Positions 6,212 through 48,769 of a stretch of 51,106 bases of DNA are shown here, piece by piece. Both the position numbers and the translations under genes were made by a program. The notes under the pieces were generated by a model. The model was given only the letters and a program-made list of their open reading frames with translations, ran no database searches and was not told the DNA's origin. This DNA comes from Octopus bimaculoides (lineage: Eukaryota): assembly GCF_001194135.2 (NCBI RefSeq), contig NC_068988.1, forward strand, positions 79,741,423 to 79,792,528, in the 5' to 3' direction. Position 1 is the stretch's first letter. Each line of letters begins with the position of its first letter.

Positions 6212-6212
6212 A

Positions 6213-24510: not shown

Positions 24511-25066
24511 CGTATTTGGTGGTGGTGGTGGTGGTGGGGGGTTTAATACTTATTTTGGTAGAGAACACTCTCTTCTCGAGAGAGTACTCCAAAGCCAAAG
24601 TTATTTTTTCTCGGAAAATTTCAAGAAGGGTACATTTCACCGGTATACAATCCTGACTACCACTACTACTACAATAATCACTGCAGTGGTGCTTGCTATT
24701 TACCATAACAGTAGTAGGGAGACAGTAGTCAGTTACTTGAGCCATACTTGGTGTATGTATGAATGTTTCTTCTGTTTTTTTAATTATTATAAATCTTCCA
24801 CTGAGGAAGGAGCCAGTTTCCAACAAAGATACATGGCTCCATCTTTGGGATGGAGTTAACACAGATAAATTCAAATTTGGAACTTGAGAAAAGTCTTGTA
24901 TATTTTTACAGTTAAACTCATAGATTGCACTTGTAATGTACGAATTAGCCGGTCGATTTCTCTTTCTGAAAAACCCTTGTTTATCCAGATTCTCCTTTAA
25001 GCATTTACTAACAGCCCTACTGCTCCAATTATTATTGGTATGACGCACGCTCACACGTGCACACAC
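24494..25066 (-). other. Unassigned 190-codon open frame in non-repetitive DNA
   Basis: Long stop-free stretch in AT-rich DNA. The start lies in CA-repeat sequence, no domain is recognised and no good splice acceptor was found. Confidence 0.15.
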
Positions 25067-25450
25067 GAAGACTGATACTCACACGCATTAATACATACTA
25101 ACTTACACACTCAAACATACACTCACGCGCACACACACAGACACATACACACCGATTCGAGCACACACTCACACGCACATACGCTCTCTCTCACGCATTT
25201 ACACACACACACTCGCTCACACACATAGACACACACACACTGTCTGTTTCTCTCATGCACTCACTCACACACACATACACATGCACGTGTGCGTACACGC
25301 ACACGCTTCCACACACTCTCACACAAGGCATCGCTTATTGCTAACACTGATATTATCAATAACGTCATCTCTTGTTGACATTCGCACACGTACTCACTAG
25401 CGCGCGCTCTCGCACTCACACTCTCACACTCTCTCACACACACACGCACG

Positions 25451-25501
<51 letters not shown>

Positions 25502-25999
25502 NNNNNNNNNNNNNNNNNNNNNNNNNNNNNNNNNNNNNNNNNNNNNNNNNNNNNNNNNNNNNNNNNNNNNNNNNNNNNNNNNNNNNNNNNNNNNNNNNNN
25601 NNNNNNNNNNNNNNNNNNNNNNNNNNNNNNNNNNNNNNNNNNNNNNNNNNNNNNNNNNNNNNNNNNNNNNNNNNNNNNNNNNNNNNNNNNNNNNNNNNNN
25701 NNNNNNNNNNNNNNNNNNNNNNNNNNNNNNNNNNNNNNNNNNNNNNNNNNNNNNNNNNNNNNNNNNNNNNNNNNNNNNNNNNNNNNNNNNNNNNNNNNNN
25801 NNNNNNNNNNNNNNNNNNNNNNNNNNNNNNNNNNNNNNNNNNNNNNNNNNNNNNNNNNNNNNNNNNNNNNNNNNNNNNNNNNNNNNNNNNNNNNNNNNNN
25901 NNNNNNNNNNNNNNNNNNNNNNNNNNNNNNNNNNNNNNNNNNNNNNNNNNNNNNNNNNNNNNNNNNNNNNNNNNNNNNNNNNNNNNNNNNNNNNNNNNN

Positions 26000-26063
<64 letters not shown>

Positions 26064-26185
26064 TATCGGTGAAATAAGACACTGACACTCGAAATGACAA
26101 TACTATTACATGTCTGTTTCTTCATTATTTGACTGAATGAAAGTCATAAAGTTAGATTTTTTTAGTTATTGTTTTTACTAATTAA

Positions 26186-26400
26186 AAGGCGGCAAATTAA
26201 CAGAATCTTTACCACGCTAAGTAAAATGCTTGGCAGCATTTCATTCTTTTATATGCTCCGAATTCAAATTCTGGCAAGGTCGACTTTGCCTTTCACCCTG
26301 TTGGAGGTCGATAAAATAAGTACCAGTTAAGTACTGGGTCAATATAATCGACTAACCCCCACTCCCAACATTTCAGGTCCTGTCCCTATATATAATAGAC
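26186..26400 (+). mobile_element. SINE (32137-type tail)
   Basis: aaggcggcaaattaacagaa...gaattcaaattctggcaaggtcgactttgcctttca...taatcgactaacccc...tcaggtcctgtccct. Confidence 0.8.
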
Positions 26401-26783
26401 AGGGTTTATTTTTATACTATATGTAAGTGTATACTAAGTAATCATAAAATTTACATATTTATCTTTAATAAATTAATAGGTTATTGAATGTTTAATTACA
26501 TTAAATTATGGACTTAAATATTTTCTTGTTTTGTTGTGTCTGGGGAGAGTCATTTTCACTTTCTTGTTCCAGTTGTCATTTTGGGCAAAATTAAATACAT
26601 GACACGCGAGAGAAAGTTATACACTCCTCTGATAATGTTAATTCTATAAAATACATTGAATATATTCACATACATCTACATCTACATACAATATGTATGA
26701 ATGGATAGATGGATGCGTGCACGAGTTGTACTTTTAGGACTCATTTTGCAGAAAAATAGACATATGCAATAGCATTCTATTTC

Positions 26784-27106
<323 letters not shown>

Positions 27107-28087
27107 NNNNNNNNNNNNNNNNNNNNNNNNNNNNNNNNNNNNNNNNNNNNNNNNNNNNNNNNNNNNNNNNNNNNNNNNNNNNNNNNNNNNNNNNNNNNNN
27201 NNNNNNNNNNNNNNNNNNNNNNNNNNNNNNNNNNNNNNNNNNNNNNNNNNNNNNNNNNNNNNNNNNNNNNNNNNNNNNNNNNNNNNNNNNNNNNNNNNNN
27301 NNNNNNNNNNNNNNNNNNNNNNNNNNNNNNNNNNNNNNNNNNNNNNNNNNNNNNNNNNNNNNNNNNNNNNNNNNNNNNNNNNNNNNNNNNNNNNNNNNNN
27401 NNNNNNNNNNNNNNNNNNNNNNNNNNNNNNNNNNNNNNNNNNNNNNNNNNNNNNNNNNNNNNNNNNNNNNNNNNNNNNNNNNNNNNNNNNNNNNNNNNNN
27501 NNNNNNNNNNNNNNNNNNNNNNNNNNNNNNNNNNNNNNNNNNNNNNNNNNNNNNNNNNNNNNNNNNNNNNNNNNNNNNNNNNNNNNNNNNNNNNNNNNNN
27601 NNNNNNNNNNNNNNNNNNNNNNNNNNNNNNNNNNNNNNNNNNNNNNNNNNNNNNNNNNNNNNNNNNNNNNNNNNNNNNNNNNNNNNNNNNNNNNNNNNNN
27701 NNNNNNNNNNNNNNNNNNNNNNNNNNNNNNNNNNNNNNNNNNNNNNNNNNNNNNNNNNNNNNNNNNNNNNNNNNNNNNNNNNNNNNNNNNNNNNNNNNNN
27801 NNNNNNNNNNNNNNNNNNNNNNNNNNNNNNNNNNNNNNNNNNNNNNNNNNNNNNNNNNNNNNNNNNNNNNNNNNNNNNNNNNNNNNNNNNNNNNNNNNNN
27901 NNNNNNNNNNNNNNNNNNNNNNNNNNNNNNNNNNNNNNNNNNNNNNNNNNNNNNNNNNNNNNNNNNNNNNNNNNNNNNNNNNNNNNNNNNNNNNNNNNNN
28001 NNNNNNNNNNNNNNNNNNNNNNNNNNNNNNNNNNNNNNNNNNNNNNNNNNNNNNNNNNNNNNNNNNNNNNNNNNNNNNNNNNNNNNN

Positions 28088-28185
28088 CGGCAGCAGCGGC
28101 AGCAGCGGCAGCAGCGGCAGCAGCGGCAGCAGCGGCAGCAGCGGCAGCAGCGGCAGCAGCGGCAGCAGCGGCAGCAGCAACGGCA
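28088..28185. repeat. GC-rich 9-bp tandem repeat (CGGCAGCAG)n at a gap edge
   Basis: About 10 perfect units emerging from the 981-bp gap. Confidence 0.95.
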
Positions 28186-28689
28186 GAAGGAGACAACTTT
28201 TTGACTAATTACTTAATCGAGTTGTTTGATGGGCAAGTTCTTTCATCGCGATCTGCGACCTAATGATGCACAATTAAATACTTTTCTTCTGATACAAACA
28301 ATAAAAGAGTCAATTAGTTGGCAATTAAACTGATTTACAATAATTAAAAGTACTATAAATATTTCTCGTTTTGAGCTGTAGATTGTCTGCAAAGAAATTA
28401 TGTGTTATATTAGTATGTGCTGTTATTATAGACTCTCACACATAACCATGGATATTTGTGTAAGACATGACAGCCGCTACAGCAGAAGGTACTTATGTTA
28501 AGTGCAATGACCTTAGTAGCCATGTGTGGGGAACAGAACAGAATAGAAGGCCTTCTTGTATTCTAGCCATACAGTTACACGCTCTCTGTGTTACTTTCAT
28601 ATTACAGACACAACTTTATTTACCAAAAGTTGTTCTATAAATCCTAAACTAACTTCTGTCTATCTGTCATCTCACCAGTCACTATATTA

Positions 28690-28980
28690 TAGGATTCACT
28701 GGTTTTGAAGAAGCTAGTCGAAACTGTGAGGTGTTTGTAAGATTTATACTAGTTCCTCAACGGTTACGAGGGGATTTTGTTCCAGTAGGGTCTGCCGGAC
28801 GTCCATGGCGAGCTCTACAGATCTTCCAGGACGAGGCTTGTCTTCTAGGTTGTAGTTTCCGGTTCGGAATTTCTGGAACCACAGTTGAGACTGTTTTACG
28901 CTTATCGTCCGATCCCCATATATTCTGCATTAATATTCCTGAGACTTTCCGTTGCATTGTTGCCTTTATTGAACTCATAA
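28690..28980 (-). mobile_element. Possible N-terminal ORF fragment of a non-LTR element
   Basis: Basic, low-complexity frame (ORF 28757-28978, ...RARHGRPADPTGTKSPRNR*GTSINLTNTSQFRLASSKP) resembling LINE ORF N-termini. No catalytic motif. Confidence 0.3.
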
Positions 28981-29192
28981 AGCAAAATATGCAGAATATG
29001 CTGTGCTACTTTATAGCTTCGAAAAAAATAACTGTGTTAAAATCGAACTGCACTCTTCAAAACTTGCGCTTAGAATAAGTACAAGGAAAATTATTACCTG
29101 CTTTTATAGCAAGTTGATGGAAGTAGTTCATCCCGTCCCCCTCCGACTTTTAGTTCATGCAAGTGAAAAAACTGCATGACTTACGGGATGAC

Positions 29193-29249
<57 letters not shown>

Positions 29250-29589
29250 ATGTACACATATTCATCTATACAATCATATACGTACGTATACATATATACA
29301 TGCATACATACATATGCACAAAGATATACATACATTCATTGATGTGTATACATATATACATAGACGCAAACACAAACATCTATACATACATCTATACATA
29401 TCCATATCCATTCATGCATACGTCTTTACATAAATACATATATAAATACATATATGCATACATCATTACATTCATGCATACCTACATAAATACATACATA
29501 CATACATACATTCATACGAACTCAAAATGTATAGAATGCTCTTTACTGTGAAACTAGCTGACGTTGGATCGCGAGGATAAGTGGTTGCA

Positions 29590-29870
29590 TCAACCTGTCG
29601 GCTACTCGGGTAGTTGAGTATCAAAGGCCGCAGAAGAATTACAACAATCAAACGCTCGTCTGATGTTGCTGGAAAGAACTCAATGTGGATATGGGCGAAG
29701 AGAAATGACCAATGGACCTAGTTTATGGATTCCACTGATTATTTATAGGAAATATAAGGAAGAAGAGAACGGTTCGTTCGTCGGTCAGAATGGCCTGGTG
29801 GGCTGAAACACAGACCTGGAAACACAAGTTCACAAAAAGAATGACCCAGATTCAAATTCCGCTGAAGACG
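29590..29870 (+). mobile_element. Highly decayed RTE-like LINE 3' fragment
   Basis: Fragmentary WIWAKRNDQWT..WIP..RK pattern resembling RTE ORF ends. Confidence 0.3.
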
Positions 29871-32136
29871 GGATTTTAAAAAGCAGCAGCAGTCATGACC
29901 TGGTTTGACCCGGGAGTGGCAGGTATAAGGGCCGAAACACTTGTCCGATGGGAGTTCTTACTTTGAAGATCTCTCCTGCTGAGTGTGTTTATGCATGAAT
30001 ATATACGAAGTAAAGAGTTAGGAAGTTGCTTTTACTATCCTGAGGTCTCGTGTTCGATACCACTTCTCCAAGTATATTTTACCATGACCTGGGTTTGATA
30101 TATACCTGTAAATGAAAATGGGTTGACAGAATCTACAGAAGTCTTTTTCCTGGACTATTATCATTGTTATTCAAACATTTAGCTTTGTAATACTCGTGTC
30201 ATATTGATCCTGTTTGATGATTACGAACAGGATATAAACGTTTGCGGAATACCCACCCATCGATGATTCTGTTGATCTACTAAGATTCATTCATTGCTCT
30301 CACCCACGAAGTCTCCATTTACAGCAGCTTGTAAAACTAGAAACATAGTTACTAAAAATAGTTGTTTTTCTGTTTTTGACGAAATCCAGTTCACAATCCA
30401 AGACTACGAATCATTTCGAAAAATAACAGAAGCGAGTTCAACGAGGTAGGGTTACTCTGATTGTTTGCTTGCACTGTTTTTATTCGTTTCTCCTGAATTT
30501 TTAGGCAAATTGCCCTAACTTACTCAGAAATATCACTATAAATATTGTTTTGATGAGACATAATACAGTAAAAGTTCTCTGTGACCAAGCCCTCAGGTAT
30601 TCACTAGTTTATGCTTTTCGCTGTATCAACCCGTGGCTTTTACAAATGTATTTGACTATGCTGACTAGTTGCAACAGCGTGTTTTCACGTCATACCAACA
30701 TACACATATATGGAAGAATCCCACATTGTATTACGTCATCTTGGCATTTATTATCGTTCGAGATCTTATCTAATGGGTGTATCCCGCCATGTAGAAACCG
30801 AATTACCAGTAATTCCAGCCTCTATCTGAAATACACCAAATTATATATTAATCCCACAGCCTAGTTTCTTTCTATAGGTTTCTTCACGTATAGAAAGAAT
30901 CGATCTATAGTTCGGTTCGAGCCGATCTTTGAAAAGACACTTTTATATTGCTTGTGTGTGGTACGTAAGAAGGATATCACTACTAACTAATTAATCAAAT
31001 TCTTGGCTCTTGGAGCACTACTTAATATAAGAAGCAAAAGCTGAACTTGCATGACCTTTTTCAGGTTATCGTTATATTTAGAATGTGCCAGCAGTAGAAT
31101 GCCATAGTAAGTATTTCGCCGAATTCTGTATATCCTATAAACTGTTATCTTCAGTGGATCATCGTTTCTGCGTGAATATATAAATAGATTCTCTCTTCAT
31201 TATAACAAACATAAGCATGACAAATAATGTTGAATAATTGACATATTAATGTAAGTTGGCATTCAATGTTGGTGGTGTCGAAAGTAAAAACGTCAGTAAA
31301 CGTTTATGCAATGCAATCACAGTTCGACATTAATATAAATATACTGGAAGAACGACCTCCCCGCTCACTGTACGTAAATATTACGTCTTCTTCGGTGCCT
31401 GACTCTAAGCTATTTAAACTGCAGACAGAACCACTTTGCAACTCTCTTCCTACTTTATATACTCACACTAATTAATCATAGACCACGCTGACAGTTTCAT
31501 CCAGATGAGTCGATGTAATGCCGGTCTACGAACTGAATGGTTTACAGTTTTTACAACCTTTTTGGAGAACTTAATGTACATCTTTATTTTTTCTAAATAA
31601 ACCCATGATTTTAGCCTGGCAGTGACTATTAACCAAAGTGATTACCCTATAGCTGACACAAGCTTCCATGTTGTGACATGTATCACAAAACTAGTGTGAT
31701 GCTGTTGTTATATCACTTGACTGCCTACCTATCCAGTCTAATTGAATCGATATAGGTATTTATCTAGATACTCTCAAGTCTCTCAATCGTAGTCTCTTGC
31801 TTGAAGTCTAGGAAACACTTGAATCCGTTGCTTAAATTATTTCAAGTACATGAGCGGTATTGTATCACCCTAGAAGGATGTAATGCCAAGCTAACATCGG
31901 CGAAATATTAATAACGTAAAGGGCCTGAACTGAGTGCGCACAGTTTTTTTGTAAAACTTTCTGATTATACTGACAATCTACCACCTAAAATATATGGTAT
32001 AATTAATACTCTAATAATTAACACAAGGTAAACTAAATGTCACTTTTCTGTGGAGGAATCTTCAAATCAATGACTATTTTGTCACAAGAGCATGGACCAC
32101 TATGTCACTAGGAACTGCCCAGTAGTGTAACATAAT

Positions 32137-32344
32137 CTTTTCTACTCTAGGCACAACGCCCGAAATTTTGGGGGAGGAGGCCAGTCGATTAGATCGACTC
32201 CAGTAAGCAACTGGTGCTTAATTCATCGACCACGAAAGGCAAAGTTGACCTCTGCGGAATTTGAACTCAGAATGGTGGAGACAAACGAAAAACCGCTAAG
32301 CATTACGCCCGGCGTGCTGACGTTTCTGGCAGCTGGCCGCCTTA
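32137..32344 (-). mobile_element. SINE with 16-bp TSD
   Basis: Reverse complement of the family consensus; agtagtgtaacataat at 32121-32136 and 32345-32360. Confidence 0.92.
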
Positions 32345-32992
32345 AGTAGTGTAACATAATACATGAAGAATAGTTTAGAAAAGGTGTAGAATTGTACGTA
32401 ATGAATATTATAGAAATAATGTAGAACTGGATGTAAGGTGTACTGCAGAAATAGTAGTAATGAAGAATAGTGTAGAAACTGCGCAGAACGGTTGTTATAA
32501 AAGTTGAGTAGAAGTAGTCTGAAATGGTACATAAGGAATGTGTAGAAACATTGCTAGAAAACAATTAGGACATTTGAAATAATCAAGATTGAAGAATGAA
32601 CAGTATAATAATAATTCCTTGAGTTTTGATAATTTTATACGTCTTAAGAACAAAAGCAATCCAATATTTTGGGACTACTCCTTTATCCGCGAAATAGAAA
32701 ACATTTTATATTCTTCTCTGGCTCTCATATGAATACACTGACAAAGAACATCAGGGTTTTTTTCTCGTCACTCCAAAGAAATATATCCAAACTTATGAAT
32801 AACGTTGTATAATTTTCACCGACAGACCATCATCAGTTTTCTTGGACTCTCTTTGCTATGAAGAGGAAAGTATATGTAAGAAAAGTATTTCTTATTGAGA
32901 TGAATAAAAGTGGAACGTAGAGAGACCTTGGATGTGAAGGAGAAAATCAGACCCAAGTGCTGAAACTGACATAATAATTATTTCACCACCAG

Positions 32993-33023
32993 GGAAGATA
33001 GTGAAAACAAACTACATCAAACT
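32993..33023 (+). CDS. Candidate 31-nt micro-exon (phase 2 to 0; R-EDSENKLHQT) possibly upstream of the RAWUL exon
   Basis: ttatttcaccaccAG|g...caaact|GTAAGA. Phases match the short linker exon preceding the RAWUL exon in BMI1; no sequence homology. Confidence 0.25.
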
Positions 33024-33073
33024 GTAAGAAGAGAAAACTTCAGAATTGTTACTGCGTGCTATTAAACAGTAAA

Positions 33074-33258
33074 CATACATACATACATACATACATACAC
33101 ACACACATACATACATACATACATACATACATACGCATGCATACATACATACACACATAGATACATACATACATACATACATACACACATACATACATAC
33201 ATACATACATACATACATACATACATACATACATACATACACATGTACGTATGTATGT
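33074..33258. repeat. (TACA)n array flipping to (TATG)n at ~33243
   Basis: Direct reading: ...catacatac acatgtacgt atgtatgt. Confidence 0.95.
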
Positions 33259-34730
33259 CATTATTCAGTTTTATTTCAAGATTTTTTGCCAATAGAGAAC
33301 AAATCGGTTTCTAACCTAGATCCAAGGATCCTTCATTGGAATTGTAACATCAATAAAAGGGTATTTTTGTATGTATGTATATGTGCAGATTTGTATGTAT
33401 TCTCACGCATATAGTTGCATATCTAGACATGCTCATATATATTTAAATGATAAACTTCTGAAAAGTTTTACAGTTCCACTGATGGATTGGATCTGTAGTC
33501 TTCAAATTAGCTTTCTCCTTTCTAGTTTTGAGAAGCCTAATTTCTCAAGATTGGTATTTAGGCAGGGTGTTACATATCCCAGGGCCCCAATAATTACAGG
33601 TATAAACCTGAACTTCTAATCTGGATAGAGTAACTGCAGACTTCTCAATAGTTCAGCATAGGTGTTCTCTTTTCCACTGATTTTCAGCTTTGTGTTAACA
33701 TCAGCTGGGCAACTGATTTCTACAACTGTGCACAGTTTCTTTTCACTATCCCAAATCATAATATCAGGTCTGTTCTGCTTACATATTATTGAGGTCTTCG
33801 CTGGGACATTTCACCAGTATTCCTTTCTATTATGAGTGGGTTCTTATTTCTTTGTCTTCTGGCTTATCCTTCCGACGGATTTCATTATAGAGTGTCCTAG
33901 CTACAACATCATGTCTCATTGGTAGATAATACCGTGTAGATACTGATATATATCGACAAGGAGAGGGTTTAGCTATAGGTTCGCCATTATCACCGATAAT
34001 GACCAATATATACATGGAATACTGCGATATGATGATGACACCGTTATACTCTGGCTCCATCAGGAAGATGTCCAAGTACTGTTAGATCATGTGAACTCAA
34101 TAAAGCCACCCATACAGTTCATAATGGAAAAGGAAAAAGACAATCAGCTAGTATTCCTGGACGTATTAATAACACACACCAAGTATGGAGTCAAGCATCC
34201 GTATACCGCAAGCCGACCTTCACTTCAATTCCCACCATCCATACAGTGTAAAGAGAGGGATTGCTCAGTGTCTAAAACATCGTGCAAAGAATATAAGTTG
34301 CGATCGTGATACACACCACGAAGAAATGATCAAACTCAATAACAATCTATTAAGCATCAACTACCCCCAAAACATAGTATCCACTCCAATTATGAAGAAA
34401 ACGAGAGGATGAAACCAATAAACTCTCCACAGTCTGTCTACCCTATGTGAAAGGCTTCTCCGAAAAGATACAAAAGATATGCGGCCCATATGACATCAGA
34501 TACATTAGTATTTTTCGGGTTTTCACATCAATGGCTCGTATCTCATCAAGCGTCCAATGAAGCAGCCCAAATATTGGTATGAATACTGGCACTGCAAACA
34601 CATTGTGGGCCACTATTTTATTGAATGAAGAATGTTCTGAGGTCCGGATTTTCTATAGTCGGCTGTAATATTCCTTAGTGACGCGTGTTTTGTTACAAGT
34701 GTCATTGTAAGATATATTTTTATCCTCCCC
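33259..34730 (-). mobile_element. 5'-truncated R4/Dong-like LINE with probably intact 3' end, interrupted by a PLE fragment
   Basis: Homologous to the 22271-24510 copy (33520-33936 and 34505-34730). Keeps RPDIMIWD...VEISCPAD (restriction-like endonuclease), stop at ~33443-33445, and a 3' UTR with AATAAA ending in (ACAT)n. Confidence 0.88.
33937..34504 (+). mobile_element. Penelope-like element reverse transcriptase fragment
   Basis: IYRQGEGLAIGSPLSPIMTNIYME, LRYDDDT, VNSIKPPIQFIMEKEKDNQLVFLDV, YRKPT, LHFNSHHP..KRGI, LPYVKGFSEKI...YDIR: the PLE RT and thumb motifs in order. Confidence 0.92.
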
Positions 34731-35001
34731 TGTATGTATGTATGCATGCATGTATGTATGTATGTATGTATGTAGAGATAGCAAGGCAAAATAAAAGTTT
34801 ATCTTTCATGTATATTTTCTTTAATTTATAAGCAGCTGTTTATTAAATAATTTCTAGAAGACGAATTTTCTTCTCTCATTGAAACACATTGATTTATTTT
34901 GCAGCGGGCAACCTCCTGATGTGGACTTTGATCCTCTTTCAGATACTAGAAAGGTAAGATATATGCACACACAAACACGCACGCACGCACGCACACACAC
35001 A

Positions 35002-35069
<68 letters not shown>

Positions 35070-35149
35070 NNNNNNNNNNNNNNNNNNNNNNNNNNNNNNN
35101 NNNNNNNNNNNNNNNNNNNNNNNNNNNNNNNNNNNNNNNNNNNNNNNNN

Positions 35150-35161
35150 CTCTTCCGATCT
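35150..35161 (+). other. Illumina adapter remnant CTCTTCCGATCT at a contig start
   Basis: Exact 12-mer 3' end of the TruSeq adapter, directly after the N-gap. Confidence 0.85.
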
Positions 35162-35289
35162 AAGCATTGAAAATTTATCGTTAATGGCAAGAATTATTGC
35201 CTTAAAAGTTCTAAGTGTTTAATCACTAACATACAATTAAATATTTTATTGACCAATTTTGTGTTCTTTTTATAACTTAGTTATTGTAT

Positions 35290-35880
35290 AGACTTGTTCC
35301 CTTACCAAATGTTTGTAGCATTTCACTCCAACCAGGGATTTAAAACCCATCGAATATCGTACACCTTTCACTCGCGACAACTGCCAACAATTTAAGACAC
35401 AGGCTCCAAAACAGCGGGGAAAATTTTTATTTTGGCAAAAGAAGTCGCGAATGTTACACGAGAATAATCGCAGCTGACCGAACTGATGCAGTTTATCTGC
35501 TTGCAACTGAAATAGGAACTGGTTCATTTCTCCGTCCTTCTACTCTTCAGTTCGTAATACCTAGTTCAATAATGGATCAATTTCCTTAATGCAGATAGTT
35601 TCGTGTTGTAGGAACACTTTGACAGTCAACAACTTTCGAGATTGTCGAGACATATTCAATTATAACCAGGAATTTCATCCGAGGGAAAAAATGTTGAAGT
35701 GTCTCCCATCATGCTTTTACCTGTAGTTACACTTTGGTAATGGATCGCACAATTGCATACAGGAGTTGCAAAAGATCACTTATAAATTTTCTGTATGAAA
35801 TATAGGGAAATATTCGAAAAAGTAGCTTTTTTTAAATCTCTATCTGCAAATTTCTGTTAATGCAAACATTTCTTTTACCC
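35290..35880 (-). mobile_element. Very old CR1/L2-like ORF2 3' fragment
   Basis: Degenerate SYRKFISDLLQLLYAIVRS, ELKSRR, IRDFFCQ and FKSLV pieces in CR1-like order. Confidence 0.35.
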
Positions 35881-36254
35881 GCTTCGGTATTGTGTCTCTT
35901 GATAGCACTACAGCTTCCACAACTTTTCTGATTACTCTGTCAAATGTAATACATTGATTTGAATGAATCATGCATTGTCTTGGAGTTGTGATCGTTGATT
36001 TTCACAATGACATTGTTAAGTCGGTGTGAGAAGCCAGATCTGGCCAGTTTGAACATAAAACAAGTAGAAAATTTGGGGCTGAATATGGCCGGTTTACATT
36101 CCTATGATTTTCTTTATTTCTATTTAATCTTCCACTCCAGCCCCATCTTTCTGTCTTTCTAATCGAATCTTCCCATTTTTATTTGTGTTTTATAATCCTA
36201 ACGTTATTTTGAACCAGCTCGTTAAAATATATTGGTGTATTTCTGTTTTCTTAG

Positions 36255-36353
36255 CCCGAAGACCACCGATATCTGTCATGTCCTGCTACGTTTCCAGTTA
36301 AGCATATCAAAAGATTTATTCGAATAAAGCATTCTCTTCCTGAAAAATACCAG
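36255..36353 (+). CDS. BMI1: Internal coding exon of a Polycomb group RING finger protein (BMI1/Psc-like), RAWUL domain segment
   Basis: tttctgttttcttAG|ccc...cag|GTttgg; 99 nt, phase 0/0, no stop; PEDHRYLSCPATFPVKHIKRFIRIKHSLPEKYQ aligns gaplessly to BMI1 [33 protein letters not shown], which as I recall is also one 33-codon phase 0/0 exon. Symbol is by similarity only; orthology unverified and other exons not found. Confidence 0.75.
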
Positions 36354-36559
36354 GTTTGGTTTTTGATTTTTTTCAGAAACTCACATCGTTCTGTAATTTT
36401 AGTAAAAATGAATTTAAGAATTATTTCTGCATCCTAGATATTGTACATGCCGCATTATTACCGCCATATATATCACCTAAAGTAGCTTGGTCTGAGAATT
36501 GTTTGATGTTAGCTTTCAACAGCTATATACGATTAGCTTCAAAATACTCAGGCGTCCAT

Positions 36560-36776
36560 CTTAAACCCTTTGCAACAGTTTGTGTTATCGTCCTCTCGTA
36601 TATGTGACTGGCACACAGGCACCTTCAAATATTCTACATCCGTTTGAAATTGTTGTAAGTAGGTCAAGGCTCCCATGCATATTCTTAGCATAGTTTCAAG
36701 TCATCCACTATGAAACAGCGTGTAATTTTGACATTTGGGTTTCCTCTTGAACCAATGAAATATCCTTCAGACTTTT
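36560..36776 (-). mobile_element. R4/Dong-like RT fragment whose 5' break abuts (TACA)n
   Basis: Homologous to ~23270-23435 (FIVDDLKL vs FFVDDLKL); followed on + by (TATG)n at 36776-36817. Confidence 0.85.
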
Positions 36777-36842
36777 ATGTATGTATGTATGTATGTATGT
36801 ATGCATGTATGTATGTATTATATTTATTCTCTTATTCGTTTT

Positions 36843-37010
36843 TTTTTTACTTGTTTTAGTCATTTAACTGTGGCCATGCTAGAGCACCGCCTTGTTTCAG
36901 TCATTAGACTGAGCGCACGTTGGAGCATTAACTTGAAAAATTTCTAATCGAACGAATTGACACCAGCACTTAGTATTTTTTAAGTTTAGTATTTATTCTA
37001 TTGGTCTCTT
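36843..37010 (-). mobile_element. Partial SINE (46813 family 3' end)
   Basis: ttttacttgttttagtcatttaactgtggccatgctagagcaccgcc... Confidence 0.7.
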
Positions 37011-37882
37011 TATGTTATTTAATCACATAAAATGTAGTAATTAACTTAGAAAGGAATATTAGGGAATACCTAACTATGTGGCAAAGACCGCTCTCTATTG
37101 ATTATGGAATGAGTATTCATTAGAAAAACAGAGAGTTGATGTGAACAACTTCCTAGTATAATCTGAGTCTAAGAAGAGAGACATCCTCACCCCATCCAGT
37201 GTAACCAAAAGATAGGAAACCTGATGCATTTATAATGAACAAAATAATCAACAGAAAACGAAGAAGTTAATGTTGCTTATTTTAACATGTCAACCAATCA
37301 CAAAAGTATGGCTTCACTATCTTTATCAAAACACAGAACCTATATTCATTCTCCATTGATTCAAACGGCGGGCAAATTGATCCCGTAGAAGATAGCATTT
37401 TGTTAACATATTTTAACAGACGTACATTGAGTGTCCAGCAAGGATAGACTTTAGAATTATAGGCCGATGTCAATGTAATGTATATTTGGAGCGAATGACA
37501 GATGTCGTTGAACAGGAGGTAAAGGGAGACAACATTGATGGTAGCTTTGCTGAAACATAGTCAGGGCGAATATAAACAATATAAACATCGAAACAGGCCT
37601 TATTTTATCAAAACATTGGCCTTCAATTGTTACTAATGCAGCTTATTCATCCGAATCTGGTGGTATGCATGCGTACTGCTCACATACCCTACTGAAGTCA
37701 CAGATGGCTGAGTTGTTCAGTGTCGGATAATTGACCGATACGTCTACGTTTCGAATCCTGTTGTTACTGCTGATATGTCCAAGTAGTTTCAGTCAACTTT
37801 GTTGTTTGGAAATAAGTATGACACAGTTCATCGAACATAGCTATATGTTATTAGGTATATCATACATAAAAGACATATTAAA

Positions 37883-38099
37883 CGAGAGAGTGCTAAAAAG
37901 TTCCCTGTTTTAAAAATATCGCGGAAGGCCTTACTGGAGGCCTAACTTTCCAAGTTATTTTACGGGGCTTACGAAAACTTAAGGATCACTGCAATAAGCT
38001 TGTGAATCTGAGAGGGGAGTACGTTGAATAAAATCATAACTAACTGATCCTCCTGTATTCTCTTTTACCCAAAGCCAGGAGTATTTCAGCACCCCCTCG
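37883..38099 (+). mobile_element. mariner-derived MITE (~217 bp)
   Basis: TIRs cgagagagtgctaaaaagttcc / ggagtatttcagcaccccctcg; keeps a transposase C-terminal tip HCNKLVNLRGEYVE*. Confidence 0.7.
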
Positions 38100-38399
38100 C
38101 ATATATAAGAATTAGCAAACATTTTTGGTGATGATACAAATACGTTCATCCAGTCTGTAGTCAGATTGGAAATAATTCTGTTACAATCATATCTAAGTAG
38201 AATTGGTATGAAGGAATTAGTGAGTAGTTTCATTGATATATACACCACCAACAGACCACCAACGTGGTCGCTGAACCTGCGAGAAGCATCAGCCAAATTT
38301 CTATCAAATCACACTATGTTATCTTAAAAAACAAAAAAGACACGCACTTTTGAGAATTTACTCCTACAAAAAGACGGAATAACCATAGCTAAAATAGTT

Positions 38400-38705
38400 T
38401 GGCAACAACAGCAGCAACAACGACCATAGCAACAACAGCAGCAACAACAACCATAGCAACAACAGAAACAATGACAAATGCAGAAACCACAACGCAGCAA
38501 TAGCAACAACAGTAAGAACAATTACAGGAGTAACAACATCAACGGCAATAATTACTGTAGCAGCGTTAACAACAATTACAGCAACAACTATAACAGCAAC
38601 ATTGCAGCGGAAGCAACAGCAATAACAATATTAGCGACAACAACAATTGCAGGATCTGCAACAACAATCGCAACACCAGCAGTTACAACAACAACAACAA
38701 CTATA
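38400..38705. repeat. CAA/CAG-rich cryptic trinucleotide low-complexity tract
   Basis: Direct reading. Confidence 0.85.
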
Positions 38706-38963
38706 GTTTGCTGTTCGGTAAGTTTACGAACATGTTTCTACATAATTCATTTATCTATTAATCTGTTCACCCTCCCACACACATGCACACACATATACAC
38801 ACATACATAAATGCACACGCACACACATCCATACGTAAACACCCCCCACACACAACACACAGACACACGTATATATTATAATCACAATCATTTACATTTA
38901 TATACATGGATATACACTCATATACATACATACATACATACATACATACATACATACATACAT

Positions 38964-39345
38964 GTTGGCACTCCGTCGCTTACGACGTCGAGGGTTCCAG
39001 TCGATCCGATCAACGGAACAGCCTGCTCGAGAAATTAACGTGTAAGTGGCTGAGCATTCCACAGATATGTGTACCCTTAACGTAGTTCTCGGGGATATTC
39101 AGCGTGACCCAGTGTGTGACAACGCTGACCCTTTGAATTACAGGCACAACAGAAACAGGAAGTAAGAGTGAGAGAAAGTTGTGGTGGAAGAGTACAGCAG
39201 GGTTCGCCACCATCCCCTGCCGGAGCCTCGTGGAGCTTTAGGTGTTTTCGCTCATTAACACTCACAACGCCCGGTCTGGGAATCGAAACCGCGATCCTAT
39301 GACCGCGAGTCCGCTGCCCTAACCACTGGGCCATTGCGCCTCCAC
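38964..39345 (-). mobile_element. Young tRNA-derived SINE embedded in a (TACA)n array
   Basis: Minus-strand head gtggaggcgcaatggcccagtggttagggcagcgg...ggtttcgattccc (A and B boxes); (catac)n repeats on both sides. Confidence 0.88.
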
Positions 39346-40104
39346 TACATACATACATACATACATACATGCATACATACATACATACACGAGCATAGAG
39401 TCATTGGTTAAATTCCTAGACTAGCCGTGTTCTGTCTTTGAGCAAGGCCCTTCACTTCGAGTTTCCCTTGTCCACTCAGCAGAAAATTAAATATCAGTCT
39501 AGTGCGGGAGTCACTTTCTAGATGTCTCTCTGCTTCAGTGAAAAGAGTGCCGGGCGGGTATGTACGCTTGATAATGACTTCATAAAACAGTTATCGAAAG
39601 TATAGTATATTCTACTAAGTCATACGCACTGCGAATGTCGGCTATGTGTGTTATCACACATACATACATGCGCGCGCACACACACACATTCACATACACA
39701 CTTATACAAACACGTACAACACACATACAAACACACACACACACACATACACGCGCGCGCATAAGTGAGACTTAGACAACTTGTATTGCATTCCTAGGAG
39801 AGTTCCTCAGAGAGTGAAGTATCTCTGGGAGATCTTCACTAAAATATGCTTGTCTAGCGGTGGATTCCAACAAACCGATTGATGTGCATATGCGGGCGTG
39901 GTCAATTGGTTGGTGACAGAATTGATGAGGTCCATAGATTTACAAAAAATACATTAAAGGGAAGTAATGAAAAATATAGAAATACTTAGAAGAGCTGCCG
40001 ATGTGGTAAGCCGACGGCACCACCATGCGACATGTTGATCTGCATTGCATATACATACAAACGCGTGCGCAAACACACACACACATATTATATACATACA
40101 TACA

Positions 40105-40228
40105 TACAAAGAAGTTTGCTTCCCAACGACATAGTTCCGGAGTCAGCTGCTCTTCGTGGCACTTTGAGCAAGTATCTTCTACTACAGCCTCAGATGTACC
40201 AAAGTTTTGTGATTGGATTTGGTACACA

Positions 40229-40292
<64 letters not shown>

Positions 40293-40480
40293 AGTGTGTC
40301 TCTGTGTCTGTGTTTGTGTTCCCACCTGTCACCGTTTGAAAACCGCTGTTGATGTGTTTATGTTCCCGTAACGTAGCGGTTTGACAAAAAGGGCCGATAG
40401 AATAAGTATTATGCTTAAAAAATAAGTCTCAAGGTCGATTTGTTCGACTAAAAACCCTTCAAGGCTGTGCTCAGCATTGA
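40105..40480 (+). mobile_element. Diverged SINE (46813 family) with an internal (CA)n expansion
   Basis: gtggcactttgagcaagtatcttctactacagcctc...tttgtgattggatttggta...ccgatagaataagta...ggtcgatttgttcgactaaa. Confidence 0.75.
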
Positions 40481-40879
40481 CTATCGCGTGTGTATGTGTG
40501 TGTATGTACATGTATGTATGTGTATGTATATTATANNNNNNNNNNNNNNNNNNNNNNNNNNNNNNNNNNNNNNNNNNNNNNNNNNNNNNNNNNNNNNNNN
40601 NNNNNNNNNNNNNNNNNNNNNNNNNNNNNNNNNNNNNNNNNNNNNNNNNNNNNNNNNNNNNNNNNNNNNNNNNNNNNNNNNNNNNNNNNNNNNNNNNNNN
40701 NNNNNNNNNNNNNNNNNNNNNNNNNNNNNNNNNNNNNNNNNNNNNNNATATAATATAATATAAGGTTCACTCTGAGACCACGCAAACATCCTCCGGCGAG
40801 AATATGCCAACCATGACCCCCTTCAACACAAGAAAATATAAACGCTATTCCTACCAAAAAGGCATTATCGCTCGTGGCC

Positions 40880-41400
40880 CTTCAGCCAATGATGAACAGC
40901 ACACAATCTTTCCTAATCACTGAATACATCTTTAGCTACGTTCGCATCCTGACCCTTTACCAATTTCTTCAGAACTAGAATATATATCATCCGCAACAAT
41001 TAATGATAGCTTAAAAGCTCAAGATGACGCCCACAATTTCACATTGCCCTCCTATCTGAGTTAACGCATTTGCTGCTCACACGCATATATCCTTCTCGAA
41101 TTCTAGAAAATAGTCCTTGGCCAACACTCACTACCTTTTCTGCCACTATTAAAATGGCCTTTGCTCTTCAGTGATGGACGCAACCTCCACTCAAACATTT
41201 CTAACCCATTTATCTCTACTGCTCATCCCTATTATCGTGTCCTTAAATCCAGATCTCGCACTAATCACTATTCTCATCCCTTTTCCTCTGCCCATGACTT
41301 TCTCACATGTGTTGAGTTACAAAGTTTCAAGACGAACATTAGCGACAACAAGTTTACAGTTTAAGAGGGTTTGTAACGCAATGGACACAACCCTTACCTC
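40880..41400 (+). mobile_element. Decayed L2/CR1-like ORF2 3' fragment
   Basis: AHPYYRVLKSRSRTNHYSHPF...ELQSFKTNIS end motif; same type as 49300-49640. Confidence 0.5.
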
Positions 41401-41417
41401 TAGATCCAGAAAATATA

Positions 41418-42283
41418 CAGGGTGCGGTGAATAAACTGTCGTCTAAATTACACAAAAATGAAAATAACACTTGGCATCTCATTTTAACAGATATATTTAC
41501 CAAAATTACATTAAAATATCTTTAAAGAGTAAATTTATTCAATAAAATCGCCATTGGCTTCAACCACAGCCTCCAGAAGACTTCGGAATCTCCTGCAACT
41601 CTTTTGGACTGTCTCCTTGTTTAAGATGGTGTATGCTGCCATAATCCTTGCCTTCAGTTCATCTTTGTTGTTACAAGGAATTTTGTTGGTCTCTCGCTCA
41701 ACTGCATCCCACACGTAATGATCAAGGGGATTGCAGTCTGGGGAGTTAGGTGGCCAGATGTTAGGGGTGACCTGGTTGCAGAAATTGTCTGACTGCCATG
41801 ACTGGGTTCTCCTGCTTGTGTGGCATGGTGCAGAGTCCTGTTGCCAGATATAGGGGTCATCCAGCAACCACGCTCTTCATCCACAACAACACTACCCTCT
41901 CCAGGCACTTGATGTAGGACTCCGTGTTGAGTCTGAGACCGTGTGGGAAGATGAATGGAGGCATAACGTCGCCATCACTAGTGATGTTGACTGGATGTTT
42001 GATTTTTATCACTCTCGGTACAGGTCCTCAAATCATACTGTCCTCAAATTGCCGCCAAAATGCTCTGAAATGTTCGTATTGGAGCTTCTGGTGCGAATGC
42101 TAAGCAGTACAGCATGTTCTTTCCAAATTTCTGGCAGAGTGAATTGCGTCATGGTGTTGTTTTTCTCATAGACGGTGCCCAACTGACCCTGCTATACTGT
42201 GTAGTCGACACAATCAAAAACAAACAATGCGCATGCATGAAATTAAAATTATATAATGGCGGCAATTTACCCATCGCACTTTG
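41418..42283 (-). mobile_element. maT (DD37D) Tc1/mariner transposon, internally deleted (866 bp)
   Basis: TA flanks at 41416-41417 and 42284-42285; ~27-bp degenerate TIRs; QQDSAPCH...WPPNSPDCNPLD has 37 residues between the last two catalytic Asp; N-terminus MTQFTLPEIWK is joined to the catalytic C-half. Confidence 0.92.
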
Positions 42284-42490
42284 TATATGCTTAAGTACTT
42301 ATGCATATGCATAAATCTATGTATGCATGTTTGTGTATATGAGCGTGTGTGTGTGTCTGTGTGTACGTGTGTGTGTTGTGTTGTTTGTAAGTGTGTGCGC
42401 GTGAGTGAATGTGTTTATGCATTACTATTCATACGTACTTGAAAGTGTATTGGTGTATACGCATATATATATAGGCGCATATCTGTGTAA

Positions 42491-42560
<70 letters not shown>

Positions 42561-43911
42561 ATAGGCATATATCTATCATGTGCATGCAAGTTCAGACACT
42601 GGTAGGCAGCTGTAGTTGCTGAAAGAGAACATACATTGTCTAAACAATATGTCATATCTGTCTTCGTGTGTCTGTGACAATCGTTTGCCTGGCCCATGCC
42701 ATGCAACAGGACTGTCAGAAAGTCTTTAGACAAAACATTACCGCTTACTCCACACTTAAAAGAGACGCTTTGAAACTGAATGTTTCCGGTTTCACAAATA
42801 TATTCGAGATAAATCGACACTTAAACTGCCACCAACCTTTCTCTATACAAATCTCTCTTGGCTGGCGTCCACGCTGTATTTGTCTGTGTCTGTGCATGTA
42901 GGCATATATATTTACTGAATATATATACATGTATATACAAACATCTCCGTGTATGTGTGTGCGTGCGTATGTTTGTATTTGAGTATCACAAGTATGCATG
43001 TTTACTTGTATGTATGTGAGTATAAATATGCTTGAATTTATGCTTATCTACATTTGCATGTTTATAACATTGTGCATATGCGCAATATGAACGATTGCCT
43101 ACTGGTGTTTAACGTATGTACACCTATATCCACAGCCATGCAAGTGTGTGTGTGTATACATATATATATATATGTATGTACGTATGTATGTATATATATA
43201 TANNNNNNNNNNNNNNNNNNNNNNNNNNNNNNNNNNNNNNNNNNNNNNNNNNNNNNNNNNNNNNNNNNNNNNNNNNNNNNNNNNNNNNNNNNNNNNNNNN
43301 NNNNNNNNNNNNNNNNNNNNNNNNNNNNNNNNNNNNNNNNNNNNNNNNNNNNNNNNNNNNNNNNNNNNNNNNNNNNNNNNNNNNNNNNNNNNNNNNNNNN
43401 NNNNNNNNNNNNNNNNNNNNNNNNNNNNNNNNNNNNNNNNNNNNNNNNNNNNNNNNNNNNNNNNNNNNNNNNNNNNNNNNNNNNNNNNNNNNNNNNNNNN
43501 NNNNNNNNNNNNNNNNNNNNNNNNNNNNNNNNNNNNNNNNNNNNNNNNNNNNNNNNNNNNNNNNNNNNNNNNNNNNNNNNNNNNNNNNNNNNNNNNNNNN
43601 NNNNNNNNNNNNNNNNNNNNNNNNNNNNNNNNNNNNNNNNNNNNNNNNNNNNNNNNNNNNNNNNNNNNNNNNNNNNNNNNNNNNNNNNNNNNNNNNNNNN
43701 NNNNNNNNNNNNNNNNNNNNNNNNNNNNNNNNNNNNNNNNNNNNNNNNNNNNNNNNNNNNNNNNNNNNNNNNNNNNNNNNNNNNNNNNNNNNNNNNNNNN
43801 NNNNNNNNNNNNNNNNNNNNNNNNNNNNNNNNNNNNNNNNNNNNNNNNNNNNNNNNNNNNNNNNNNNNNNNNNNNNNNNNNNATATATATATATATATAT
43901 ATATACACTCA

Positions 43912-44065
43912 CACATACGACAGGTTTCTTTCAGTTTCGTCTGCCAAAGCCTCCGTGGAGGCTTTGGTCAGCTATAGTAGGAAACACTTGCCCAAGATGT
44001 CACGCAGAGAGATTGAACTCAGAACTATGTGCTTGAGAAGCAAACTGCTTGCCACGTAGCCTCTG
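43912..44065 (-). mobile_element. SINE 5' half (46813 family)
   Basis: acgacaggtttctttcagtttc...acacttgcccaag...gaactcagaactatgtg. Confidence 0.7.
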
Positions 44066-44694
44066 CATTGTCATATATTTATGTTTATTTGTCAAATATT
44101 TCACAACTGAAAATAACCACTGAAAACTTAAGCTCTATGTTTTTACTATTTCTTTTTCTATGCCATGATAAATATTCCCTTTTCTTTTCTATATATTTTT
44201 ATATTTTGTTGGGTTTGAAATACTTAAATCATTTTGTCATTAGAACAACTTTTGCACGAATTCTTTTTTTCCCCCTTCATTTCTTCAGTTTATGTATATA
44301 TTCTTAATGAAGACTACAGCTGGTTACGTCGGTCGGGTGACAGCTTTTGGCTGAAATATTAACAAGTTTTTAGTTGTCGCTGGCGTTGCTTTTGTATTAA
44401 TGGTGATTACACCAGACTGCAAATAGGTGTCATGAAGCAGTTCTGTGAAAAGGTATTTTAGCGTAAGGATCGAGAGACATCCAACGAATATTCGGTTAAA
44501 TCTTCAGCCCTAGACAAATGTCCTAATCCTATCAACCCACAGTGCAATGGAGACAAGTTTGGTTTTGATTATAGGTTGTGGTGGTTGCTGAATAGCTATT
44601 ACGTGTCGTTGCTAAATATATACTACAACAATCAGGTAGCTGGGCTGATCTGATTAAGAGAACATCGAATCAAAGCAAAATGAGGGAGAAGTGT

Positions 44695-45000
44695 CAATGA
44701 GGTCGTATTCTGCAGTCGAATCTATGGAATCTATGGAGAGGATGGATGAGGAGCGGATGGTTAGGAGGGTGGTGAAGGTAGAAGTGGTAGGCAGCAGAAC
44801 CTCGAAGCAAACCTCGATTTGTGTCGATGGATGGAGTGAGGAAAGCTTTGGTGGTTAAATGAGTTGGAGTGAGAGAGGCAAGAGAGTTTATAAATGATAG
44901 GAAAGCTTGGAGAGTGTTTGTGGACGGATGAGTGAATTTGATGTTGCTCAAAGGGGTACGGAACCAGCATGATGCAGCCGGGGTAAACCAGCATATATGC
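44695..45000 (+). mobile_element. RTE-clade LINE 3' end
   Basis: MERMDEERMVRRVVKVEVVGSR...KPRF..MDGVRKAL...EAREFINDRKAWRVFV*. Confidence 0.75.
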
Positions 45001-46812
45001 TATNNNNNNNNNNNNNNNNNNNNNNNNNNNNNNNNNNNNNNNNNNNNNNNNNNNNNNNNNNNNNNNNNNNNNNNNNNNNNNNNNNNNNNNNNNNNNNNNN
45101 NNNNNNNNNNNNNNNNNNNNNNNNNNNNNNNNNNNNNNNNNNNNNNNNNNNNNNNNNNNNNNNNNNNNNNNNNNNNNNNNNNNNNNNNNNNNNNNNNNNN
45201 NNNNNNNNNNNNNNNNNNNNNNNNNNNNNNNNNNNNNNNNNNNNNNNNNNNNNNNNNNNNNNNNNNNNNNNNNNNNNNNNNNNNNNNNNNNNNNNNNNNN
45301 NNNNNNNNNNNNNNNNNNNNNNNNNNNNNNNNNNNNNNNNNNNNNNNNNNNNNNNNNNNNNNNNNNNNNNNNNNNNNNNNATATAATGAATCTCAGCATA
45401 GAGCGATCAGACATTAGCGATACATTACACAAGGAAATTAGACATTATTGGAATATTAGAGAAGTTGCACTTTCTGTATAAATTTTCTTATAAGACATAC
45501 AAAATGTTGGGTCCTGTAAATTTGTTCACTTTATTTTAAGGAGAGAAGTTTGTCAGTTTATATTGTATTAAAGTAAACAACAAAAATGTATTGAAAGAAA
45601 ATAGATATTCATTCGACAAATCCATTATGTTCCCCTACCATGTTCATTCTACCCGAGCAGAAATGTTAGTTGTTGCACTTGTTTTGTTGAATTAAGATGC
45701 ATAACTAGAATTACCATGGAGTAAGTCTGTAATTTGGTTGCAATTCAAGCTTGTAGTTATTTCAGTTTGCTTGAATTCACTGGGAAAATACGTGACAATC
45801 TAATTTCAATCATCACTTGAAGTTGATAGGGCAAGTCCCAAGTTTTCTAAGTTAGTTGAATATCGTAGGGTCAATGATTTATACCCCGTCGTTAAGTTTG
45901 TATCTCGTATGGAGACATTCTATTTTCTTCACCTCAGATCACTTAGAGTTTCTTTTCATATATAGAGAGTGGGGAACGGCAGTACAGTATCATTCATGAG
46001 CTTTTTCAGAGTTCCGAGGCTGGAGGGATGGAGACAGAAAAATATGCTCTGATTGAAGACACGGTCCCAAAGCTTGCAGCAAAGTGGACTACACGAAAGA
46101 CACTTGAGGATTAGATGGTGTACTTAAATAGCAAGATCTCGATATAATAAATCATTGTCTCTTTATAATGTCGGAACCTCTAAAGATCCCTCTAGGATCA
46201 TCTCGAATTCAATGTCTCTATGATGTCTCCAACAGTATAAAGTAATGACAATATCATCAACATCAGGTTAAATGGCTCTACAGAGATGTTTATCTGGTAG
46301 AAATAGCAGTCGCGTATCTCTCAGATTACAACCTACCATCTTTAGGAAGGGAAGGATACGTAGAATAATGTAGTCTGAAATATACTATATCTAAAGAAAA
46401 AGAAGTTGGTCATGACTAGACTACCTTTATATCATAGTCAGGACAGATTAGGGGTTAAATAACAACAAAACAACATAATTGAAATATTTCTTTTTTTATA
46501 TTTCGTTTTTTATATTTCCAATAAATGATATGATCCCAATGATATACAGGAACGCTAAACTTGATATGGAATGCTCCGCCATTGTTAGACAGAATCTAAC
46601 CCAGCATACTAACAGTTCATACACTACATATATTGACTTTCTCCAGGGTTTATTGATTGGTTAAGATAGCTGATACTTCTCAATTCTAACATCTCCTTAG
46701 TATTCTAGAAAAAGAAATCCATATTTTGACCCAACAGATACCTCATGTAATGAATGTGTTACAAACTCCCGTCTTTGGTAACGCGAACGTAGTAATAATA
46801 TAATATTCATTG

Positions 46813-47220
46813 ACTCTTTTACTCTTTTACATGTTTCAGTCATTTGACTGCGGCCATGCTGGAGCACCGCCTTTAGTCGAGAAAATCGACCCTAGGACTT
46901 ATTCTTTGGGTGCCTAGTACTTATTCTATCGGTCTCTTTTGCCGATCCGCTAAGTTACAGGGACCTAAACACACCACCATCGGTTGTCAAGTGAAGTTGG
47001 GGGGGACAAACACAGACACACAAACATATACACACATATACATACATATATATACATATATATGACAGGCTTCTTTCAGTTTCCGTCTACCAAATCCACT
47101 CACAAGGCTTTGGTCGGCCCGAGGCTATAGTAGAAGACACTTATCCAAGGTGCCACGCAGTGGGACTGAACCCGGAACCATGTGGTTGGTAAGCAAGCTA
47201 CTTACCACACAGCCACTCCT
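46813..47220 (-). mobile_element. Full-length tRNA-derived SINE
   Basis: Head aggagtggctgtgtggtaag...ggttcagtccc, core ccttggataagtgtcttctactatagcc, internal TA/CA tract, (AGTAAAAG)n tail. Confidence 0.92.
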
Positions 47221-47802
47221 ACTAATATTAAAAATAATAATATAATTAGAATATTGCTAAACAGATTTATCAATGAGAAAATAAAATTATTAGAGTTTGA
47301 CGAGAGTTACGGCAGTCCATTTCATCAGCAAGCTACTTAATTAAAACAAAATTTACAGTGAAGAAGGAAATATTTCAGCCAAAATTTTTGCCAGTTAACG
47401 ATAAACATTTTCCCACATAAATTATTAATGATGCCATCATTGATAAAGTTTTCAAAATGACAATTATCGAACAATAGTCTACTCAAGATAATTCTGTGAT
47501 TAAACCAGACTCCACGATTTACTGGCCAGTGTTTCAGATGAGTTTTGCAGAGCTATGCGGGAACCAAACACAGCACTGCTAGAAATAAGGCCTCTTTTTA
47601 TTATACAATGTTTTTGTTTCTAACTGTTAAAATTATATCTAATCAAACCTATTTTATATCTAAATGGATAAGTTTCAGACACACCCCTTTGTCGGTTACT
47701 AGAATTAACATTAAATTAGTTTATACGCGTTTATTCAAAATTAATAGAATATTAACCTACAATATTACATACCTTTGTGTCTAAGTGTGTGTGTGTGCGT
47801 GT

Positions 47803-47838
<36 letters not shown>

Positions 47839-48720: not shown

Positions 48721-48769
48721 TATTGATCATATCTTTGTATGTCTATACGTTTAGTGAACAAAAGGCCCT

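Follow-up and report, generated by a model that had tools for sequence, protein, structure and literature searches.

The question raised by this locus is whether a short open block within a repeat-rich stretch of octopus DNA is a coding exon and, if so, to which gene it belongs. In the window, by which we mean the whole 51,106-nt stretch of Octopus bimaculoides DNA analysed here, positions 36255-36353 of the + strand translate as PEDHRYLSCPATFPVKHIKRFIRIKHSLPEKYQ (33 codons, phase 0/0), and an earlier note, made from the letters alone, had taken this block for a hidden RAWUL exon of a BMI1/Psc-like Polycomb gene. We confirm that 36255-36353 is a coding exon of an octopus BMI1-like Polycomb gene, a reading that is correct and ordinary, and very probably it is a constitutive-looking internal exon of the octopus PCGF2/4 (BMI1, MEL18, Psc) orthologue. 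The gene would lie on the + strand and would have two exons in the window, 34905-34953 and 36255-36353, with a 1.3-kb intron between them and much longer introns on the outside that run off both window ends; the predicted spliced product reads ...(N)GQPPDVDFDPLSDTRK-PEDHRYLSCPATFPVKHIKRFIRIKHSLPEKYQ... The features are the following.

1..34904, + strand: part of the upstream intron, with 10 N gaps
34905..34953, + strand: 49-nt micro-exon of the BMI1-like gene (tblastn of the Octopus vulgaris protein CAI9726763.1, E 1.6e-6)
34954..36254, + strand: GT...AG intron between both exons, 1301 nt as assembled
36225..36254, + strand: polypyrimidine tract and AG acceptor of the RAWUL exon, 78% pyrimidine at -20..-3
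36255..36353, + strand: RAWUL exon, encoding RAWUL/UBL strand beta2, helix alpha1 and the start of beta3, equivalent to human BMI1 residues 158-190
36354..36359, + strand: GT donor of the RAWUL exon (GTTTGG), where the homology to every orthologue stops exactly
36360..51106, + strand: part of the downstream intron, with 4 N gaps

The stop-free 99-nt block, with a pyrimidine-rich AG acceptor and a GT donor, is present in the sequence exactly as the earlier note had described it. Its context, with slashes at the exon boundaries, is ...tatttctgttttcttAG/CCCGAAGAC...AAATACCAG/GTttgg, and the TAG at 36252-36254, which is in frame, doubles as upstream stop and acceptor AG. Pyrimidines occupy 14 of the 18 positions from -20 to -3, compared with 54% in the local background, and a CTAAC branch-like site is found 53 nt upstream of 36255. 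The donor, CAG/GTTTGG, is moderate and usable but not strong, with T at +3 and +4 and G at +5. Since the reading frame stays open until 36434 (60 codons), the 3' limit of the exon is given by this donor and by the end of the homology and not by a stop codon. The exon is single-copy within the window. Splice-like context alone is common by chance, as 502 open intervals of 99-300 nt, bounded by AG and GT in phase 0/0, occur on the + strand of the window, and in 26 of these the tract upstream is just as rich in pyrimidines; the case for an exon must therefore rest on homology.

This homology was found with several independent comparisons. The Pfam RAWUL profile (PF16207) matched the 33-mer significantly (E 7.9e-7) over profile positions 1-29/65, which bears out the assignment to this domain; the score of 29.9 bits is under the gathering score of 33.5 bits because only half of the domain is present. 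Among PDB sequences, only BMI1 chains matched, at residues 160-190 (5FR6_A, E 7.8e-5), and the identity to BMI1 is 45% over 31 residues. A tblastn search of the window with human BMI1 gave E 2.6e-6 at the exon and 0.77 for the runner-up, and an HMM built from BMI1, MEL18 and Psc, run against all 2618 six-frame open segments, gave 3.8e-7 for the exon and 0.38 for the runner-up. When the exon was scored against human PCGF1-6, RING1B and a fragment of fly Psc, a panel in which the RAWUL part of BMI1 was checked to be exact, it reached 37.7 bits with BMI1, 34.7 with MEL18, 28.5 with Psc and 25.0 with PCGF5, whereas PCGF3/1/6 and RING1B did not rise clearly above noise. The likeness to Drosophila Psc / Su(z)2 lies in membership of the PCGF2/4 family and in the RYLxCPA...HLKKF motif, with 46% identity over 24 residues to the octopus exon when the same Psc fragment is used. 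Psc has, in addition, a long C-terminal compaction region. In a library of 1.8 billion proteins the 33-mer reaches significance only for near-identical matches, and its sole match in the search of protein representatives (P0001), a repetitive CASCPAYG...IRRLRRIR protein, was rejected as spurious. The literature on cephalopod and mollusc PCGF sequences yielded accession lists only.

The orthologue is a protein annotated as 'complex BMI-1-like' in Octopus vulgaris (CAI9726763.1 / UniProt A0AA36B3L8, 276 aa, assembly GCA_951406725.2), so that the gene is already annotated in a member of this genus. It was retrieved with a search-only profile that matched 2701 PCGF proteins, CAI9726763.1 being among the 120 matches listed. 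The rows of this profile were chimeric, each combining the RING of one of five PCGF2/4, PCGF3 and PCGF1 proteins with the window exon and the second half of that row's own RAWUL; the profile served for candidate retrieval only, and all conclusions come from later direct comparisons. Residues 199-231 of CAI9726763.1 (PEDRRYLSCPATFPVKHIKRFIRIKHSLPEKYQ) are identical to the window exon at 32 of 33 positions, the one difference being His4 (CAC) in the window and Arg in O. vulgaris. The protein combines an N-terminal C3HC4 RING (zf-C3HC4_2, residues 57-95, E 9.1e-11) with a RAWUL at residues 203-258 (E 1.8e-16, 60.8 bits, above the gathering score); the C-terminal RAWUL is thus seen in the full orthologue and, as its first half, in the window exon. 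Over its length, CAI9726763.1 is 49-53% identical to BMI1-like proteins versus 30-34% to PCGF1/3/5, and a rough NJ tree, built without bootstrap, placed it inside the PCGF2/4 group. PDB matches, panel bits, identities and tree together put the octopus sequence closer to PCGF2/4 than to PCGF1, 3, 5, 6 or RING1/2, and the specific claim of a BMI1/Psc-like gene, as opposed to any other PCGF, is upheld by them.

Comparison with CAI9726763.1 also revealed a second exon in the window. The earlier note had found one host exon, and the homology at 36255-36353 bears this out, but it had overlooked the 49-nt micro-exon at 34905-34953. The first base of this exon completes an Asn codon, and the 16 codons that follow, GQPPDVDFDPLSDTRK, are identical at 16 of 16 positions to residues 183-198 of CAI9726763.1; the exon encodes the linker just N-terminal of the RAWUL core. 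It is flanked as ttattttgcag/C GGG CAA CCT ... AGA AAG/gtaaga, with phase 2 on entry (AA/C, the Asn of ...LELTPN) and phase 0 on exit, so that it joins 36255 in frame across the GT-AG intron. As this intron holds a (CA)n run (34966-35069) and an 80-N gap (35070-35149), its 1301 nt are an assembled length only. Taken together, the two window exons are 48/49 identical to CAI9726763.1, with no frameshift or stop. The O. vulgaris protein reads ...SDTRK/PEDRRYL...EKYQ/IEIYH..., colinear over both predicted junctions, and because it reads straight across them the O. vulgaris model uses exactly the junctions predicted in the window. That model draws on a mixture of transcripts, proteins and ab initio prediction (PMC10700109). 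Use of the junctions 34953/36255 and 36353/next exon in the present animal is predicted from this sister-genome gene model, and, to judge by the sequence, the exon would be spliced and translated here as well. The likeness between the two genes thus covers both exons and their junctions; the O. vulgaris protein has a RING plus RAWUL architecture, and its gene is spread over 203 kb.

The same exon is recognizable in the genomic loci of four relatives, the vertebrate case being BMI1 of the snake Crotalus and not human BMI1.

Lottia gigantea, L001:8750-8848: homologous exon, 99 nt, AG/GT, phase 0/0
Mercenaria mercenaria, L002:6509-6607: homologous exon, 99 nt, AG/GT, phase 0/0
Saccoglossus kowalevskii, L003:5602-5697: homologous exon, 96 nt, AG/GT, phase 0/0
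Crotalus horridus BMI1, L004:2592-2690: homologous exon, 99 nt, AG/GT, phase 0/0

In all four relatives the following exon starts with I/V-D/E-I/V, and the intron positions around the first RAWUL exon of the octopus gene are those typical of the family. The earlier note had given, for BMI1, a matching exon of 33 codons in phase 0/0; this holds because the homologous exon is 99 nt and phase 0/0 in the Crotalus BMI1 locus, in Lottia and in Mercenaria. The exon occupies the same position in Lottia LOTGIDRAFT_135291 (P0066), where it is 58% identical to that of the octopus and the model places the acceptor 24 nt further upstream, and in the Mercenaria BMI-1-like X2 protein (P0042), where it is 47% identical. 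A small exon entered in phase 2 also lies directly upstream in Mercenaria, as the micro-exon does in the octopus, whereas Crotalus and the acorn worm Saccoglossus are without a separate micro-exon at this place.

The octopus gene differs from its relatives in size. The O. vulgaris BMI-1-like gene has a range of 203,312 bp for 276 aa, on a chromosome of 118.9 Mb, compared with an annotation median of 20,288 bp for gene length and 2,467 bp for introns in that species (PMC10700109). The BMI1-like genes of snake, limpet, clam and acorn worm span 3-9 kb, those of Lottia and Mercenaria only 7.7-8.6 kb, and Crotalus BMI1 is compact at about 3.4 kb versus at least 203 kb in octopus. Since 203 kb are used for 276 codons in O. 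vulgaris, the giant introns are real, and the earlier note's claim of very large introns is substantiated by a range that far exceeds the median. For a gene spread over such a distance, one exon pair in 51 kb is to be expected. In the assembled window the intron upstream of the pair is longer than 34.9 kb and the one downstream longer than 14.7 kb, barring an exon in one of the 14 N gaps. Searches with human BMI1, PCGF3, two HMMs, the O. vulgaris protein and a motif scan agreed with the earlier note in finding neither RING exons nor the next RAWUL exon: the RING exons and the ...SVSLELTPN exon were not found in the assembled 1..34904 (tblastn, HMMs, orthologue protein), the next RAWUL exon (IEIYHTDEPLVDNYTLIDIAYIYMWKR) was not found in the assembled 36360..51106, and the motif scan of the window for the last 'PLxLxYxV' exon was empty. 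The N-terminal C3HC4 RING is present in the O. vulgaris orthologue, which holds both exons, and is absent from the assembled window.

The surroundings of the two exons are rich in repeats. The earlier note had spoken of a field of transposable elements (TEs), which is plausible because the O. vulgaris genome consists of about 66% repeats (PMC13282606); this description stands in so far as SINE-like copies, other dispersed repeats, one decayed DDE trace and microsatellites were found, but no intact TE open reading frame accompanies them. AC/TG and ATAC microsatellites are abundant throughout, and about 9.5% of the window recurs within the window. A SINE-like dispersed repeat is present at 20599-20888 and 46813-47222 (+), with 95% identity between the copies, and diverged copies lie at 43887-44055, 40110-40452 (-) and 36845-36893. 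The 26-mers CAGTCATTTGACTGCGGCCATGCTGG and GTGGGACTGAACCCGGAACCATGTGG, which we take to be octopus repeat 26-mers, have exact matches in the window, as would suit DNA of octopus origin. When 24 of the longest open segments of the six frames were compared with Pfam, no intact TE domain emerged. At 41538-41876 (- strand) there is a weak resemblance to the C-terminal region of a DDE_3 transposase (E 0.0019, under the Pfam cut-off), probably a decayed Tc1/mariner-type relic, and a weak zf-RVT trace was seen at 22170-22631 (-, E 0.046). No Rfam family matched in the window. We also observed that 22270-23435 and 33521-36777 (+) share four collinear same-strand blocks with 79-93% identity; the distance from block 3 to block 4 is 47 bp in the former copy versus 1914 bp in the latter, and the extra stretch there contains both BMI1-like exons. 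These blocks reflect either chance flanking by fragments of one repeat family or an intragenic duplicate that is minus the exon-bearing piece.

Structural work on human BMI1 indicates what the exon may contribute to the protein. In vertebrate BMI1 (PCGF4; PDB 5FR6, 2NA1), the homologous exon encodes residues 158-190, the beta2-alpha1 part of the UBL. In the BMI1 UBL/RAWUL, PHC2 lies between the beta2 strand and the alpha1 helix and contacts Tyr163, Leu164, Arg165, Cys166, Pro167, Met170, His174, Leu175 and Phe178, and the R165E/H174E double mutation abolishes PHC2 binding (Gray et al. 2016, PMC5105191). In the octopus exon, six of these nine contact residues are identical (Y163, L164, C166, P167, H174 and F178) and two are replaced conservatively (M170 by Phe, L175 by Ile), the ninth, R165, being Ser. 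Mutation of Arg165 in human BMI1 makes PHC2 binding about 30-fold weaker. This position is also non-Arg in Lottia, Mercenaria and fly Psc. The AF2 model of CAI9726763.1 is poor overall (pLDDT 56.7), and secondary structure was taken from residues 201-250 only, where 10-residue blocks have a pLDDT of 69 (201-210) and 80-87 (211-250); the modelled strand at 204-208, helix at 213-223 and strand from 230 match beta2-alpha1-beta3. By alignment, the 99-nt exon supplies the beta2 strand and the alpha1 helix of the ubiquitin-like RAWUL, and it is predicted to form the Polyhomeotic-binding face of a canonical PRC1 PCGF subunit. In human BMI1 this groove binds the HD1 hairpin of Polyhomeotic (PHC) and thereby builds canonical PRC1, and the RING at the N-terminus, for which other parts of the gene would code in octopus, pairs with RING1 for H2A ubiquitylation. 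The octopus product may thus bind Ph/PHC and RING1 as its counterparts do in flies and mammals.

Three other explanations for the block have to be weighed against a working PCGF2/4 gene. The two exons could be a dead remnant, that is, part of an unprocessed pseudogene or of a decaying BMI1-like paralogue that yields no functional mRNA. It fits such a reading that only two exons are visible in 51 kb, that collinear repeat blocks lie on both sides of the exon pair and that molluscs may have two BMI1-like genes, as Lottia P0066 and P0082, located on one scaffold, suggest. However, sparse exons are just what a 203-kb gene predicts, the window contains no second copy, both exons are open and have canonical splice sites, and their 48/49 identity to an annotated O. 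vulgaris protein is unbroken by any frameshift or stop. We consider a dead remnant improbable on these grounds.

It is still less probable that the block belongs to a non-canonical PCGF gene (PCGF1, 3 or 6) or to RING1/2. Pfam RAWUL spans all of these families, and the domain match as such would therefore suit them equally; the panel bits, however, favour BMI1 (37.7), MEL18 (34.7) and Psc (28.5) over PCGF5 (25.0), and the full orthologue, at 49-53% identity, is far nearer to BMI1-like proteins than to PCGF1/3/5 at 30-34%. PCGF1 and RING1B structures were also absent from the PDB matches at E<=10, although RAWUL structures of both are in the PDB. As for a chance open frame with a fortuitous likeness to the motif, the abundance of AG...GT-flanked open intervals, 502 on the + strand, would allow for it, but it is refuted by the homology E-values and by the 32/33 and 16/16 identities to a real protein, and its probability is negligible. 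An internal coding exon of the octopus PCGF2/4 orthologue is hence the reading that we retain. We regard as unlikely, though worth stating, a broader proposal in which extreme intron inflation, a micro-exon absent from the examined deuterostome loci and the placement of the exon pair in an intragenic duplication come together at this gene; if true, the transcription time or the splicing of a core cephalopod Polycomb gene could come under unusual control through such an architecture.

Knowledge of PRC1 is unchanged by the finding, and its value is mainly one of annotation. Two exons as short as these, with 33 codons in one and 16 in the micro-exon, are easily overlooked in a gap-rich and repeat-rich cephalopod scaffold, and their recognition marks the 51-kb window as intronic to a Polycomb gene and not as intergenic. 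It also exposes probable errors in public gene models, those of O. vulgaris and Lottia being affected at their 3' ends and that of Crotalus by a skipped exon. In CAI9726763.1, the model appears to run past the donor that follows ...YIY(M/S)W(K/R)R and on into the intron (residues 259-276), and a similar read-through is apparent at the C-terminus of Lottia P0066 (L001 ~9525 onward), where the sequence continues with gtaagg. At this place a GT donor is present in Mercenaria, Saccoglossus and Crotalus, and Pfam RAWUL is covered over positions 1-56/65 in the O. vulgaris and Lottia models versus 1-64/65 in Mercenaria. The exon for the last RAWUL strand (PLxLxYRV) is thus probably missing from the O. 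vulgaris and Lottia annotations. In the Crotalus product P0074 ('hypothetical protein Chor_012600') the first RAWUL exon is left out, the protein reading ...KAKEE/VDVMYEEE..., whereas the exon is intact in the DNA, at 99 nt with AG/GT; this is likely an annotation error or a skipped isoform.

Some minor observations concern the annotation and assembly of the two octopus loci. In O. vulgaris, a same-strand gene with a 1245-aa product, for which no Pfam match is recorded, starts 3 bp past the BMI-1-like range and may be a TE open reading frame or part of a mis-split model. In the window, a perfect (CGGCAGCAG)x10 array at 28088-28178 adjoins a 981-N gap, a (TTA)x32 array occupies 26826-26920, and a 136-bp unit at 8373-8635 is doubled around a 10-N gap with 100% identity, a duplication that looks like an assembly artefact.
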